The position numbers and the translations under genes were made by a program. From positions 372,001 through 436,000 of the IMG/VR virus record IMGVR_UViG_3300027996_002186: DNA of 64,000 bases; one strand, 5' to 3'. The notes under the pieces were generated by a model. The model saw only the letters and a list, made by a program, of their open reading frames with translations, was not told the DNA's origin and searched no databases. This document shows positions 35,724 through 40,401 of this stretch, piece after piece (the first letter of the stretch is position 1; each line of letters begins with the position of its first letter).

Positions 35724-36599
35724 ATGGCATTAAGTTATATTGGCGGAAAGAGTCGCATTGGTACATGGATAAGGAATTACATTCCAAATGACGTAGAGAC
35801 TTACGTAGAACCCTTTTCGGGTATGTTTTGGGTATTCTTTAAGTTAGATGTTCCACAATTCAAAAATTTAAAGAGAGTTGTTTATAATGACTTTAATCCA
35901 TTAAATGTTAACCTATTTAATTGTATTGTAAACTATGATGATTTTTATGATGTGATTAAAGATTATAAATCACAGGATAAGGAATTATTCAATAGATGTC
36001 AGAGTGAAATATTTCATCCCGATTTCCAAGTTGATTTATCTGAACCTGATTATCATACAGCTGCAAAATATGCGTATGTTCTTAGTCAAGTTTGGTCTGG
36101 TACTAATCCAGAGAAAGGTAAGTTTATTGACTTAAAGGGTAAATATAAATCTAAGTTTGATTCATTCAAAGGTAAGTTAACCAATGATAAGTGGAAAGGT
36201 TATTTTGATAAGATTACTGTTTGTGAGAATATGGACTTCCAAGATGTTATTGAGAAGTATGATTCACCATCAACATATTTTTATTGTGACCCACCTTACT
36301 ATAAAACAGAAAAGTATTATGCTAATCATGATTTCGGTTTAGATACACATGAAAGATTAGCTGATTCATTAAAAGCAACAACTGGTAAATTCTCATTGAG
36401 TTACTACCACTTTGATCAATTAGAAGAATGGTTCGTGAGAGGTGATTATAGATGGGAGCAGAAAGACTTTCATAAAGCTTCTATGGCAAAGTCTGGTAAG
36501 GCACAAACAAAGGGAACAGAAATTCTGATAATGAATTATGGTATACCTAAAGATGATTTGGAATCCTCAGAAGAGGAAGAAGAAACATTTGAGATATAA
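35724..36599 (+). CDS. dam: Dam-like (D12 class) DNA adenine methyltransferase
   Basis: YIGGKS, YVEPFSG, YNDFN, YCDPPY, EILIMNY. Confidence 0.9.
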   Translation: MALSYIGGKSRIGTWIRNYIPNDVETYVEPFSGMFWVFFKLDVPQFKNLKRVVYNDFNPLNVNLFNCIVNYDDFYDVIKDYKSQDKELFNRCQSEIFHPDFQVDLSEPDYHTAAKYAYVLSQVWSGTNPEKGKFIDLKGKYKSKFDSFKGKLTNDKWKGYFDKITVCENMDFQDVIEKYDSPSTYFYCDPPYYKTEKYYANHDFGLDTHERLADSLKATTGKFSLSYYHFDQLEEWFVRGDYRWEQKDFHKASMAKSGKAQTKGTEILIMNYGIPKDDLESSEEEEETFEI

Positions 36600-37307: not shown

Positions 37308-37940
37308 TCAATCTCCGTTGAGATGATTATTGAAGTCATCTGAGTTTTTTATCACTTCACCAGAAGATGTTATAAAGGTTCCCCAAGTACAATCCATTTT
37401 AAAATAAACTCTAATCTCTAATGGATCTACCTCTCGTAAGGCTGTATCGAACTTTGTTTGCCAAAAACAAATTTTCATTTCATAACCCATTAATTTCAAT
37501 CTATTCTTAGCTTCAATTATATCATCAATCGAATCTATACCATTTTCATTTAACCAACCACCATGTGTACCATCATAAGTAAAATCAACACCGATTGATA
37601 TAAAAGTATTTTCAAACTCAGCATAGTATTTAGGTACAAAAAATTCAGATATCGATTCTAAATCTTTCTTTGATGGTTCTCTGTGAAATTTATTTCCAGA
37701 TATTGATGGTGAATAATTTATATTTAAATCTCTAGGTGTATCTTTCTTTGGGTTATAAATACCACCAAATTTATAACCATTTATAATACCTTTATCCTCA
37801 AATGATATAAAACAATTTCTAACATCATCAATAACTTTTTTAATCTGAGGTGTATTTTCAGCAGCTAATCTATCTTTCATATCTAAATATGATGGTATCT
37901 CATCATTATTTTCATTGAATTTGCTCCAGCCTTGAATCAT
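37308..37940 (-). CDS. Hypothetical protein, CTS-like N-terminus, dispersed paralog family
   Basis: MIQGWSKFNEN; DVRNCFISFEDKG; KNRLKLMGY. Confidence 0.75.
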   Translation of the reverse strand: MIQGWSKFNENNDEIPSYLDMKDRLAAENTPQIKKVIDDVRNCFISFEDKGIINGYKFGGIYNPKKDTPRDLNINYSPSISGNKFHREPSKKDLESISEFFVPKYYAEFENTFISIGVDFTYDGTHGGWLNENGIDSIDDIIEAKNRLKLMGYEMKICFWQTKFDTALREVDPLEIRVYFKMDCTWGTFITSSGEVIKNSDDFNNHLNGD

Positions 37941-37942
37941 AA

Positions 37943-37954
37943 TAATATATATTA
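37943..37954. promoter_or_regulatory. Palindromic bidirectional late-type promoter TAATATATATTA
   Basis: Perfect 12-bp palindrome in the 17-bp gap between divergent ATGs at 37940 and 37958. Confidence 0.65.
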
Positions 37955-37957
37955 AAT

Positions 37958-38302
37958 ATGAAACTGGATATTAATGAAATATATCATCAATACATAATTA
38001 GAGTTATAATATTCTCACTTTTTCTTTATAAAAGGCAAATTAGACAACCATCGGTTTATAGACAATCTGTATTATCATTTGTTAATAAAAGATTGCCTTG
38101 GAAAATAAATCTGTATGTTGATACAGGTCTTAAATTAGGGAAAGAGGATGAGAGAGATATTATATTAGATGAGTTATTAAATGGTATTGAATCGGAACAA
38201 ATATCACTTGTCACAATAACATTTACTTCACCACTGAAGGAAGTTACAATGGAGATTGATCTAAAGAGCGAAGAAAAATATCAAAAGTTTTTATATAAAT
38301 AA
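37958..38302 (+). CDS. Hypothetical protein
   Basis: 114-aa ORF. Confidence 0.6.
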   Translation: MKLDINEIYHQYIIRVIIFSLFLYKRQIRQPSVYRQSVLSFVNKRLPWKINLYVDTGLKLGKEDERDIILDELLNGIESEQISLVTITFTSPLKEVTMEIDLKSEEKYQKFLYK

Positions 38303-38304
38303 TT

Positions 38305-38913
38305 CTAAATAATATGTTTATGAAGAACACTACTTTCTGTCCATATTTGTAAATTACTTTCTCCTTTTTTTGATAAATCTAAAAGCTCATCATACGTTAA
38401 ATTACCAACAACACCACCTTTTATTAATAGGTTCTGATAATTAGAAATTTCTTTTAAAAAATCAGATTTATTTTCCTCCATGTCAGGAAAATCCCAATAA
38501 CCACTCCAAAGTGGGTTATCTATATCCAAAAATTCCTCTATTGTTCTTTCTACAAACCACCAAGTAGATCCCAACCCACCATTTCTTAATTCCCTACTAA
38601 ATGAGAATTTAGCATCCTTATTTGGAATTGGTTTGTATGGATTTCCATACCAAGATAAGTATTTTGTTTGGCTTTCTGTTGGATTTAAATAAAAATGAAT
38701 AGATTTTGTAGGATTTTGTAAACCAAGGTTTTTATAATTATTAAGAAAAGAAACATAGTCTTCATCCATAGATTGACCTGTTGATACATTCCTTAATTTA
38801 GGATCATCAATATATTCTTCTTTATCAACTTTAACTCCCCTGAGTAATGAATTTCCGAAAATATCCGGGAATTCATCTTCATAGAATTTTTCAAATAATC
38901 TTATATGTTTCAT
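38305..38913 (-). CDS. Hypothetical protein, CTS-like N-terminus, possible ADP-ribosyltransferase-like fold
   Basis: MKHIRLFEKFYE; LLRGV..KSIHF..YGNPY. Confidence 0.6.
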   Translation of the reverse strand: MKHIRLFEKFYEDEFPDIFGNSLLRGVKVDKEEYIDDPKLRNVSTGQSMDEDYVSFLNNYKNLGLQNPTKSIHFYLNPTESQTKYLSWYGNPYKPIPNKDAKFSFSRELRNGGLGSTWWFVERTIEEFLDIDNPLWSGYWDFPDMEENKSDFLKEISNYQNLLIKGGVVGNLTYDELLDLSKKGESNLQIWTESSVLHKHII

Positions 38914-38961
38914 CAAGTTATATATTAAAATAAGTAATAAGGATTTTTAATATATACTTTG

Positions 38962-39648
38962 ATGGAACATTTAGATAAATATAAATCTTTTAGTATAAAC
39001 GAAGCTGATGAAAAGGAAGTTGAATCGAAAGAGCAACCAAAACGATCAGAGAGAGTTTTGAACCAAGCTCAAAAAGAATGGGATGATGAACAAGAATCCG
39101 GTATAGAAAAAACTGAAAACATGCCAACTATGCTATTTAGTGATGTTGTTGGTTCTTCTAAGATGTGGTCTGATGATCCACTAAGTATGTCAAAGCAATT
39201 ATTAGATCATCATGAACTTGTAAATAATTTATCTGAAAAATATGGTGGATGGGTTGTTAAAACAATCGGTGACGCTTTTATGGTATACTTTGAAAGTAGT
39301 GATAAATCTTTAGTAAATGCTCTTAAATTCTCAAAAGATTTAACTAAATTAGAGAAAAAATATAAACTAAGAATAGGTGTTTGTTCTGGTAATATGGAAG
39401 CCAGATCTTATAGATTACAAAAGGTTGACTTAAAAGATTTCTTCGGGAATGCTGTTAATACCGCTTCTAGAATGGAATCTAAAGTATCTGATGCTAGAGG
39501 AGTAGCTTTCACATCAGTTAAACCAATTTCAAAAAAATTATTAAGTATAATAAAAAAGGAAGTTGGTAACTTAGATAAGGCTGATTTATCCAAGATTGAT
39601 TTAAAAGGTGTTACTGTTGATGCTGCTTATAAAATGAAATTTAGATAA
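38962..39648 (+). CDS. Class III nucleotidyl (probably adenylate) cyclase with CTS-like N-terminus
   Basis: FSDVVGSS, VVKTIGDAFMV, LRIGV, DFFGNAVNTASRMES; N-terminus MEHLDKYKSFSINE. Confidence 0.9.
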   Translation: MEHLDKYKSFSINEADEKEVESKEQPKRSERVLNQAQKEWDDEQESGIEKTENMPTMLFSDVVGSSKMWSDDPLSMSKQLLDHHELVNNLSEKYGGWVVKTIGDAFMVYFESSDKSLVNALKFSKDLTKLEKKYKLRIGVCSGNMEARSYRLQKVDLKDFFGNAVNTASRMESKVSDARGVAFTSVKPISKKLLSIIKKEVGNLDKADLSKIDLKGVTVDAAYKMKFR

Positions 39649-39649
39649 A

Positions 39650-40378
39650 TTATTCTGGATTTGGATCTGGGTTTATCCAGAACTTAACACTTAACCAATC
39701 AGTTCCGGTTAATTCATGTTCGTAATAATCAAATCCAAGTACTTCTATCATTCTATCTAATTTATCTTCGATATCATCTGGTATACTACCATCATATTCA
39801 AATGATTCAGCACCAACGTGACACATATTATCATCAACTTCATACTCAATATCTTCAGCATTTAATCCAAAGTTAGCGAACTTAGCCTTTATCTCTTCCA
39901 CACTTGGTAATTCATCATCGGTTACTTCATCTGGTTTATTAAATGAATATTTTATATTAGTAAATCTAAAATTTGTATTATCTTTGTTTGATGATCTAGG
40001 TGTTGATACATTAAAATTATCAAATATCCACCCAATATCAGCTAGTCTATCAATGGCGGTTGTCATTTCACTTACTATATCACCAAACTCTTCATTACCC
40101 ATATGTTTACTAGCAGAATTTGAATTTATAACTATATTTAATTTATTTTTAATTTTATTACCAGCTTTGAATGTTGGTTTGAAGTCAGATACATCACCAT
40201 TATCAATATAATCACTTATTGATATTTTACCATTAGGTGATTCAAACCAAATAAGATATCCCTTATCAGCAATATCTTGGACTATATCAACCAAGTCAGG
40301 TAATAATTGATTTATATTTTCTTCCTCGAATTTGCTCTCATTTAAGGAAAATTTGTTATATTTGTTCAAATACTTCAT
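39650..40378 (-). CDS. Hypothetical protein, CTS-like N-terminus, dispersed paralog family
   Basis: MKYLNKYNKFSLNES; DLVDIVQDIADKGY; AIDRLADIGW. Confidence 0.75.
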   Translation of the reverse strand: MKYLNKYNKFSLNESKFEEENINQLLPDLVDIVQDIADKGYLIWFESPNGKISISDYIDNGDVSDFKPTFKAGNKIKNKLNIVINSNSASKHMGNEEFGDIVSEMTTAIDRLADIGWIFDNFNVSTPRSSNKDNTNFRFTNIKYSFNKPDEVTDDELPSVEEIKAKFANFGLNAEDIEYEVDDNMCHVGAESFEYDGSIPDDIEDKLDRMIEVLGFDYYEHELTGTDWLSVKFWINPDPNPE

Positions 40379-40401
40379 TGTTATTATATATTAAATTAAA
40401 T

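Follow-up and report, generated by a model that had tools for sequence, protein, structure and literature searches.

The gene at positions 38962 to 39648 (+ strand) of the 64,000-nucleotide stretch of virus record IMGVR_UViG_3300027996_002186 analysed here (the window) is an uninterrupted open reading frame (ORF) that begins with an ATG at 38962 and encodes a precursor of 228 amino acids (aa), followed by a stop codon. We are highly confident that it is a class III nucleotide cyclase encoded by a phage. The precursor carries a short N-terminal leader that recurs on many proteins of the same genome, and we see a nearly even chance that this leader serves to load the protein into the capsid. The complete chain of events, in which a cyclase that makes cyclic AMP (cAMP) is packaged, cleaved and injected, is in our view possible, at somewhat less than an even chance. 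Genome coordinates refer to two records. G000 is the window's own IMG/VR record (312,709 bp, 29% GC), and over its positions 8837-312686 it shares 99.999% identity with a part of the 483,262-bp record G001; G000 is a fragment of the phage genome, and G001 is the complete record.

The assignment as a cyclase is based on sequence profiles, a structural model and residue conservation. Residues 55-177 matched the Pfam family Guanylate_cyc (PF00211) with an E value of 5.3e-19 and 68.9 bits (cut-off 21.9), and this match was recovered again in a whole-genome search. The best sequence matches in the PDB were catalytic domains of class III adenylate and guanylate cyclases. An AlphaFold2 model, made with 75 homologues, had a mean predicted local distance difference test (pLDDT) value of 80, with ~90 in the core and disorder in residues 1-23, and Foldseek matched this model to class III cyclase domains with an E value of 4e-12 and a template modelling (TM) score, by target, of ~0.76, whereby ~188 columns were aligned to RhGC, sGC, CyaB and Rv1625c. 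Taken from Pfam, Foldseek and residue invariance, the catalytic domain spans residues 55-228 (39124..39645, +). It contains the two metal-binding Asp residues D61 (in F59-S60-D61; 39142-39144) and D104 (in G103-D104-A105; 39271-39273), K100 in KTIGD (39259-39261), D159 in DFFG (39436-39438), and N166 and R170 in VNTASR (39457-39459 and 39469-39471), all on the + strand and all invariant in the 75 homologues. D61, D104, N166 and R170 align with their counterparts in PDB cyclases. The C-terminal Lys/Arg of L-K/R-G was conserved in the 75 sequences as well, and K215 (39604-39606, +) is another key residue of the domain. The protein has a cyclase fold with a complete adenine-type active site that is under strong purifying selection. 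A first reading of this DNA from sequence only (the sequence-only reading) had described a stand-alone class III cyclase with both metal Asp residues, the adenine-type Lys and Asp, the catalytic Asn and Arg, and no sensory domain, and all of these elements were confirmed, including the last, as residues 1-54 had no Pfam match.

The base that is used can be deduced from two of these residues. In the guanylate cyclase 3et6 (sGC beta), the residues aligned with K100 and D159 are Glu and Cys, respectively, and these are the base-specifying positions. In 5oyh, a K/D-converted rhodopsin cyclase, a Lys/Asp pair makes the contact with adenine (preprint 10.64898/2026.08.12.744502), and this enzyme, a rhodopsin cyclase switched to ATP, was among the top Foldseek matches of the cyclase model. 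Because K100 and D159 correspond to the adenine-contacting Lys/Asp pair, the protein is predicted to be an adenylate cyclase, of the small homodimer-type class III kind, and judging from these specificity residues its product is probably cAMP. The domain that binds cyclic nucleoside monophosphates (cNMPs), PF00027, was absent from the 483-kb genome and from three relatives, therefore the target of the cAMP would be a host protein.

The leader comprises residues 1-14, MEHLDKYKSFSINE (38962..39003, +), as delimited by conservation and a position-specific scoring matrix (PSSM), and ends with I-N-E followed by Ala, a site of the type recognised by the phage T4 protease gp21 ([L/I]-x-E). E14 was invariant (75 of 75), the third residue before the putative cleavage site (P3) was I, L, V or F, and the residue directly after it (P1') was Ala in 58 of 75 homologues and mostly Ser or Asp otherwise. 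The leader is disordered in the AlphaFold2 model. It is real, recurrent and modular. A strict PSSM made from the clearest leaders found 19 N-termini versus 2-3 of 88,294 internal positions, and a loose leader pattern matched 112 of the 622 ORFs in G001 (18%) versus 3.6% of internal-Met controls, an excess of ~90 genes or ~15% of ORFs. The leader has 9-14 residues and two consensus forms, M-[IL]-K-K-Y-x-x-F-[IL]-K-E-S and M-K-[YH]-L-K-K-[FY]-N-E. Related loci on other megaphage contigs also carry the leader, and among more distant mini-cyclases there are homologues that lack it. That the leader results from AT-rich codon bias was ruled out by phage PTm1, a jumbo phage of similar GC content (30%) with a host from the same phylum (Bacteroidota), in which no leader excess was found (10 of 299 ORFs).

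Aside from the class III cyclase, the recognisable proteins with a leader include an Acb1-like 2H phosphoesterase with a DEDD exonuclease, Rnl1, a PolyA_pol/CCA nucleotidyltransferase and a protein with an NFACT-R domain, and there are dozens of further leader proteins without matches. The phosphoesterase is a 436-aa protein (G000 146746-148056, +) that combines a 2H phosphoesterase part, with matches to 2_5_RNA_ligase2 and to Acb1, which counters CBASS, a system of antiphage signalling based on cyclic oligonucleotides, with an RNase T/DEDD exonuclease; by these matches it is a candidate cyclic-oligonucleotide-degrading counter-defence enzyme. The T4 Rnl1-type RNA ligase (G000 132705-133970, -) and the PolyA_pol/CCA-type nucleotidyltransferase (G000 92357-93559, -), both leader-tagged, look like a tRNA-repair pair.

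In phage T4, gp21 cuts after [L/I]-x-E, and the capsid protein gp23 is cleaved at L-T-E/A, the slash marking the cut. The genome with the cyclase gene also encodes a head-maturation module of the T4 type, comprising an S77 protease, a scaffold and a propeptide-bearing Gp23 capsid protein. G001 encodes a Gp20 portal (PF07230, E 2e-56) and a Gp23 capsid protein of 576 aa (137993-139723; PF07068, E 3e-26), and located between these genes is a 713-aa ORF (G001 135766-137907; L063 7766-9907), which pairwise comparison with gp21 and synteny identified as a protease-scaffold fusion. The same order was found in two further relatives and in PTm1, a cultured Tenacibaculum phage whose fused gene was labelled 'prohead core scaffolding protein and protease' by its depositors. 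The protease part corresponds to the first ~140 residues, shows 29% identity to T4 gp21 over 112 aa (E 4e-5), and its catalytic His85 (G-E-x-x-H-P) and Ser140 (V-S-S-R) align with those of gp21; a PDB sequence search with this domain gave no match. In the middle of the ORF, the scaffold part repeats a unit of 14 residues, N-L-D-K-N-I-A-Y-S-E-Y-[IL]-A-E, about twelve times and continues with an acidic tail, and the scaffold contains 36 [LIV]-x-E sites, 5.0 per 100 aa versus 1.8 genome-wide. When scored with the leader PSSM, the repeats (K-N-I-A-Y-S-E-Y-[IL]-A-E-N) were above the 99.9th percentile, and at the sequence level the leader looks like one scaffold-repeat unit, cleavage site included. 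The propeptide of the G001 capsid protein ends with F-H-S-I-N-E/N, at the place homologous to the T4 gp23 site, and its S-I-N-E is identical in the cyclase leader. A gp24-like protein starts with M-S-N-V-N-F-K-I-V-D-I-F-E/S.

A Pfam search of the 312-kb G000 for the gp21 protease, the Gp20 portal, and the HK97 protease and capsid protein found nothing, since G000 is a fragment and the module is located in the extra 179 kb of G001. Comparison of ten large ORFs with PHROGs recognised only tail-fibre-like proteins and one 'virion structural' protein. There are also stand-alone ORFs of 59-78 codons that match separate pieces of the Gp23 profile with E values of 6e-9 to 3e-5 (G000 293142-293345, +; 156340-156546, -; and ~122290-122481, +); a further one is located at G001 161226-161333. 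These could be capsid-derived mini-genes, possibly decoys or remnants.

The promoter region provides a second connection with the head genes. Analysis of enriched upstream words revealed a promoter-like motif, named P1, with the sequence TTAATATATA at 38947..38956 (+), 5 nt before the cyclase ATG. Its core, AATATATA, is the most enriched upstream 8-mer in the genome and is found before 90 genes (7.9x). The window contains 13 copies versus 2.55 +/- 1.53 expected, a number reached in none of 100 shuffles. The distance between P1 and the ATG falls into two strict classes, one of 4-6 nt with 45 genes and one of 19-29 nt with 51, and since a spacing of 5 nt leaves no room for a 5' untranslated region, the cyclase mRNA is predicted to be leaderless or nearly so. 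Motif and spacing were kept before cyclase orthologues of 46-60% identity. In G001, P1 precedes the portal, protease-scaffold and capsid genes, and in G000 it precedes large structural genes and the tail-fibre cluster; the cyclase is likely co-regulated with the head genes. P1 was found before 60 of 112 leader genes versus 147 of 510 other genes (p 1e-6), and a second upstream motif of this genome, TAnnTTTG, before 1 of 112 versus 39 of 510 (p 0.005). About half of the leader genes are located inside operons and have no promoter directly upstream. A scan for sigma-70 promoters gave fewer sites than in shuffled sequences and none before the cyclase gene.

Between the leader and the catalytic domain lies an N-terminal extension, residues 15-54 (39004..39123, +), that is acidic in composition (pI 4.45, 13 acidic versus 7 basic residues) and differs between homologues in both length and sequence outside residues 27-38 (39040..39075, +). 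In the alignment of homologues, this block, P-K-R-S-E-R-V-L-N-Q-A-Q, followed the pattern P-K-R-S-E-R-x-L-x-Q-A-Q, with R28, S29, R31 and Q37 invariant, and its mean column identity was 0.85 versus 0.81 for the catalytic core. The sequence-only reading had called this region an acidic linker, and acidic it is, but a segment as conserved as the core does not make a plain linker. The same motif, R-S-x-R-L-L, was present near the C-terminus in 37 of 112 more distant mini-cyclases, ~15 residues before the L-K-G strand, which argues that it is a functional family element that has moved, and not a spacer. From its position in these proteins, it looks like a relocated or circularly permuted element.

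These features can be combined in the following scenario. The cyclase gene would be transcribed together with the head genes, and the leader, like the scaffold repeat K-N-I-A-Y-S-E-Y-[IL]-A-E, would take the precursor into the prohead scaffolding core, comparable to what the capsid-targeting sequence (CTS) does for the internal proteins IPI-III of T4. Because the leader resembles the scaffold repeat, cleavage site included, we infer that it assembles together with the scaffold and that the protease which processes the scaffold also cuts it off. The S77 protease would cut after Glu14 and leave a 214-residue enzyme inside the head, which would enter the next host along with the DNA. There, needing no external signal, it would dimerise and form 3',5'-cAMP from ATP at a time when no phage gene is yet expressed, and the cAMP would perturb cAMP-dependent regulation via some host protein.

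The T4 system is the closest parallel for such a route. In the T4 record, IPII and IPIII start with MKTYQEFIAE followed by Ala, and MKTYQEFIAE is given as the T4 CTS (10.1101/2021.01.19.427310). The description of the cyclase leader as CTS-like, made in the sequence-only reading, stands, as it resembles this sequence and shares its mode of ending, I-N-E/A, with E14 fully conserved. As in IPI-III, the leader is short, N-terminal and amphipathic, with aromatic residues 3 apart and [I/L]-x-E followed by Ala or Ser, and it is a modular element on unrelated, fast-evolving cargo in variable gene islands. Both phages have a protease of the gp21 family, a scaffold in which such sites abound and a Gp23 with a cleavable propeptide, and the promoter before the cyclase is of the head-gene type, like those of the T4 internal proteins. 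However, T4 has three to five proteins with this tag versus ~90 leader ORFs here, the megaphage leader has 9-14 residues in two flavours, its protease is fused to the scaffold, and its cargo, putatively packaged and cleaved, includes recognisable enzymes. The concept of a capsid-loaded enzyme that acts before phage gene expression is known from T4 Alt, an ADP-ribosyltransferase that is packaged in the head and co-injected with the DNA; unlike Alt, which modifies RNA polymerase, the cyclase would make a diffusible second messenger. That the T4 CTS system has been expanded here into a general loading tag that mimics the protease-scaffold repeat, with a capsid carrying dozens of pre-made enzymes, we consider rather unlikely.

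As an enzyme, the cyclase is comparable to Ma1120 of Mycobacterium avium, Rv1625c of M. tuberculosis, CyaB of P. aeruginosa and 5oyh in fold, metal Asp residues, Lys/Asp pair and Asn/Arg pair, and as in the minimal class III adenylate cyclases a head-to-tail homodimer is expected. It differs from these minimal enzymes in its low identity (20-25%), in being phage-encoded, in the leader and the N-terminal R-S-E-R-L-L block, and in a C-terminal third that is too divergent for the Pfam model. With the Pycsar and Pucsar cyclases PycC and PucC it shares the class III-like core and, in some clades, the small size, but it has adenine-type residues, its matches to their hidden Markov models are weak and partial, it is encoded by a virus and not by a host defence island, and a cNMP-binding effector is neither adjacent nor anywhere else in the phage. 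The delivery of a cyclase that floods another cell with cAMP also recalls the class II adenylate-cyclase toxins of bacteria, as a functional analogy only, since these toxins have an unrelated fold, eukaryotic targets, activation by a host cofactor, and use secretion instead of virion delivery.

The nature of the product and the capsid route each have to be weighed against other explanations. The sequence-only reading had considered a role in cyclic-nucleotide immunity, and a product other than cAMP, i.e. cGMP, cCMP or cUMP, could act on Pycsar- or Pucsar-type systems, for instance by desensitising or mis-triggering their effectors. The PycC models of PADLOC did match the cyclase, with a best E value of 9e-5, the class III catalytic motifs are common to Pycsar-family cyclases (PMC11224242), relatives based on cGMP exist (preprint 10.64898/2026.08.12.744502), and the Acb1-like leader protein in the same phage means that cyclic-nucleotide warfare is on the agenda of this phage. 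However, the PycC matches span residues 52-124 with 14-20 bits, the best one covering residues 52-117 in the N-terminal half only, whereas the general Pfam model scored 69 bits; no PycC structure was among the 50 best Foldseek matches of the cyclase model, and the invariant base-specifying pair is of the adenine type. Moreover, a phage is normally harmed by making an immune signal. Of the proposed link with Pycsar, the weak PycC similarity is what is left, in a phage that has no cNMP-binding protein, and we regard such a product as quite improbable. Even less credible, to the point of being negligible, is that the protein is a catalytically silent nucleotide-binding or structural module, or a bacterial gene mis-binned into a viral contig. 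Nothing specific speaks for either, apart from the Pfam match that stops at position 142 of the 183 in the profile, whereas the six catalytic and specificity residues and the C-terminal Lys/Arg are kept in 75 sequences, T4-type head genes are present in the 483-kb phage genome that contains the gene, and a close cellular homologue was not found.

The main competitor for the capsid route is that the cyclase works inside the cell as an ordinary accessory enzyme, produced in the course of infection without ever being packaged, with a leader that has another role; we consider this a considerable possibility, although not a probable one. The leader could then affect the stability of leaderless mRNA or tune its translation, be a recognition tag for DnaK/DnaJ, homologues of which are encoded by the phage (judged from ORF N-termini), or be a removable propeptide that has nothing to do with capsid entry. 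This would fit with its presence on ~15% of ORFs, including cytoplasm-type enzymes such as Rnl1 and the CCA-type nucleotidyltransferase, with the enrichment of leader genes at the 4-6-nt P1 spacing (24 of the 36 leader genes with P1 versus 31 of 82 others), and with the 302-kb relative L006, in which the cyclase and its same-strand neighbours, a D12 methylase, an RNase H-like gene and a nuclease, form one block. However, the leader is not a requirement of leaderless translation, since 31 of the 55 short-spacing genes lack it and about half of the leader genes sit within operons. Its conservation is physico-chemical (interchange of Y/F/W, I/L/V at P3, an invariant Glu), its end equals the capsid propeptide site, it resembles the scaffold repeat, and the host-type motif TAnnTTTG precedes one leader gene only. 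Several other observations speak against packaging of a constitutively active cyclase. P1 is also found before the ribonucleotide reductase (RNR) alpha and beta genes and is therefore likely a late promoter but not a strict one, and it differs from the T4 late consensus TATAAATA; in essence, the late-type promoter of the sequence-only reading is nevertheless correct, as P1 is shared with the portal, protease and capsid genes. A single-sequence search with T4 gp55, which is not conclusive, found no homologue in G000, G001 or PTm1. The Pfam S77 score of the protease (18.8 bits) is below the cut-off of 27, and scoring of the T4 CTS with the PSSM of the megaphage leader gave 3.3, a value near the 99.9th percentile of internal positions, indicating a likeness that is real but modest. 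The ~90 leader ORFs go far beyond the handful of CTS proteins in T4; if they are all packaged, the toolkit is a very large one, and if not, the tag has a different role. Among them, the RNA ligase and the CCA-type enzyme are equally plausible in the cytoplasm. The R-S-E-R block may be a regulatory element, in which case the enzyme is perhaps not constitutive, and in view of the strong conservation of R-S-E-R-L-L the earlier claim of an 'unregulated' cyclase is not established. Among deposited phage genomes, the cyclase was found in LR745206 only, while the capsid protein is shared by five other relatives; being absent from several related megaphage genomes, the cyclase is an accessory gene. 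Finally, the RNA evidence consists of a single 230-nt metatranscriptome contig inside the cyclase gene, too little to determine transcription or the 5' end.

Three neighbours of the cyclase also encode a leader, each with its own copy of P1. The divergent neighbour (38305..38913, -) encodes 202 aa starting with MKHIRLFE and has P1 at 38919-38928 (-), 5 nt before the ATG. The convergent neighbour (39650..40378, -) encodes 242 aa with the leader MKYLNKYNKFSLNE followed by S, has P1 at 40385-40394 (-), 6 nt before the ATG, and had no Pfam or PHROG match. The third gene (37308..37940, -) encodes 210 aa starting with MIQGWSKFNE, with P1 at 37946-37955 (-), 5 nt before the ATG. The 202-aa neighbour is absent from a related strain, of which a contig in run X26 joins 38302 to 38962 via 15 nt, ATTAATATATACATT, which is exactly the promoter cassette before the cyclase ATG. 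This 15-nt junction suggests that gene cassettes are gained and lost at promoter motifs, and it recalls the variable internal-protein islands of T4-type phages. An AlphaFold2 model of the 202-aa protein had a pLDDT of 86, and with Foldseek it matched nothing in the PDB (best E 0.1), so to judge from this model it may have a new fold; most of its homologues are ~70 residues longer at the C-terminus. A weak Atlas lead towards an ADP-ribosyltransferase was not supported, given a confident model without a matching PDB fold. A D12-class N6-adenine DNA methyltransferase is encoded three genes upstream of the cyclase (window 35724-36599, +), and in L006 the methylase is located at a similarly short distance upstream.

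The phage is an uncultured marine megaphage of the T4-related 'Mahaphage'/Lak lineage. The closest relatives of the G001 capsid protein are in the uncultured phages LR745206 and LR756501-4 (634-735 kb, 52-78% identity), followed by the Prevotella Lak megaphages (30%) and PTm1 (28%). The locus was detected in at least 20 metagenome runs from marine, seawater and brine samples. Under the standard code (code 11), 90% of G000 is coding, and alternative genetic codes were rejected for this reason. CheckV put the completeness of the 312-kb record at 91%, yet this record amounts to only 63% of the 483-kb record from the same phage. The true genome may even exceed 483 kb, since an identical neighbour protein (P0271) is present on a 551-kb contig. 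TAnnTTTG precedes ligase, aminoacyl-tRNA synthetase, CoaE-like kinase and peptidase genes, for example the NAD-dependent ligase at G000 220461 and the aminoacyl-tRNA synthetase at 191952, and is also the top upstream word in PTm1. The host is probably a marine member of the Bacteroidota, because TAnnTTTG matches the Bacteroidota -7 box. The genes behind this motif encode enzymes and do not include structural genes, and are probably read early in infection by the host RNA polymerase.

Full-length homologues of the cyclase (218-229 aa) form more than 432 clusters, on contigs of up to 630 kb, and none was found in the cellular genomes of 185,579 species. The best cellular matches, many from Bacteroidota, cover the catalytic domain only, with at most 35% identity except for two short contigs of metagenome-assembled genomes (MAGs). 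Homologues without leader and with 36-38% identity were present on L050 and L051, contigs labelled as giant-virus MAGs, which means that either the mini-cyclase family is shared with giant viruses of eukaryotes or these are mis-binned phage contigs. The automatic annotation of the Joint Genome Institute (JGI) already labels homologues 'class 3 adenylate cyclase'. Literature searches found no paper on a phage-encoded class III, adenylate or nucleotide cyclase, and an overview of jumbo-phage genomics (PMC7824862) does not mention class III cyclases. What is new is the combination of the cyclase, the leader and the head-gene promoter, and the scale of the leader system.

It is known that phages break down or sequester cyclic-nucleotide signals; a conserved phage enzyme for the synthesis of such a signal is not described in the papers searched, and still less one that may be delivered ready-made along with the DNA. 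Should the leader load proteins into the capsid, a testable location and timing would follow for ~90 genes of this uncultured 483-kb phage, most of them without known function, and it would become clear how megaphages might employ their large capsids to carry a set of protein tools. If the tag is a general one, its cargo would comprise the cyclase, the Acb1-like phosphodiesterase with its exonuclease, the tRNA-repair enzymes and many proteins of unknown function; the cyclase would be the first second-messenger synthase that a phage delivers in its virion, and the leader and the extension with the R-S-E-R block might keep it silent in the producing cell until the prohead protease cuts. The 14-residue tag and the protease are small enough to be tested in E. 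coli or T4 without culturing the phage.

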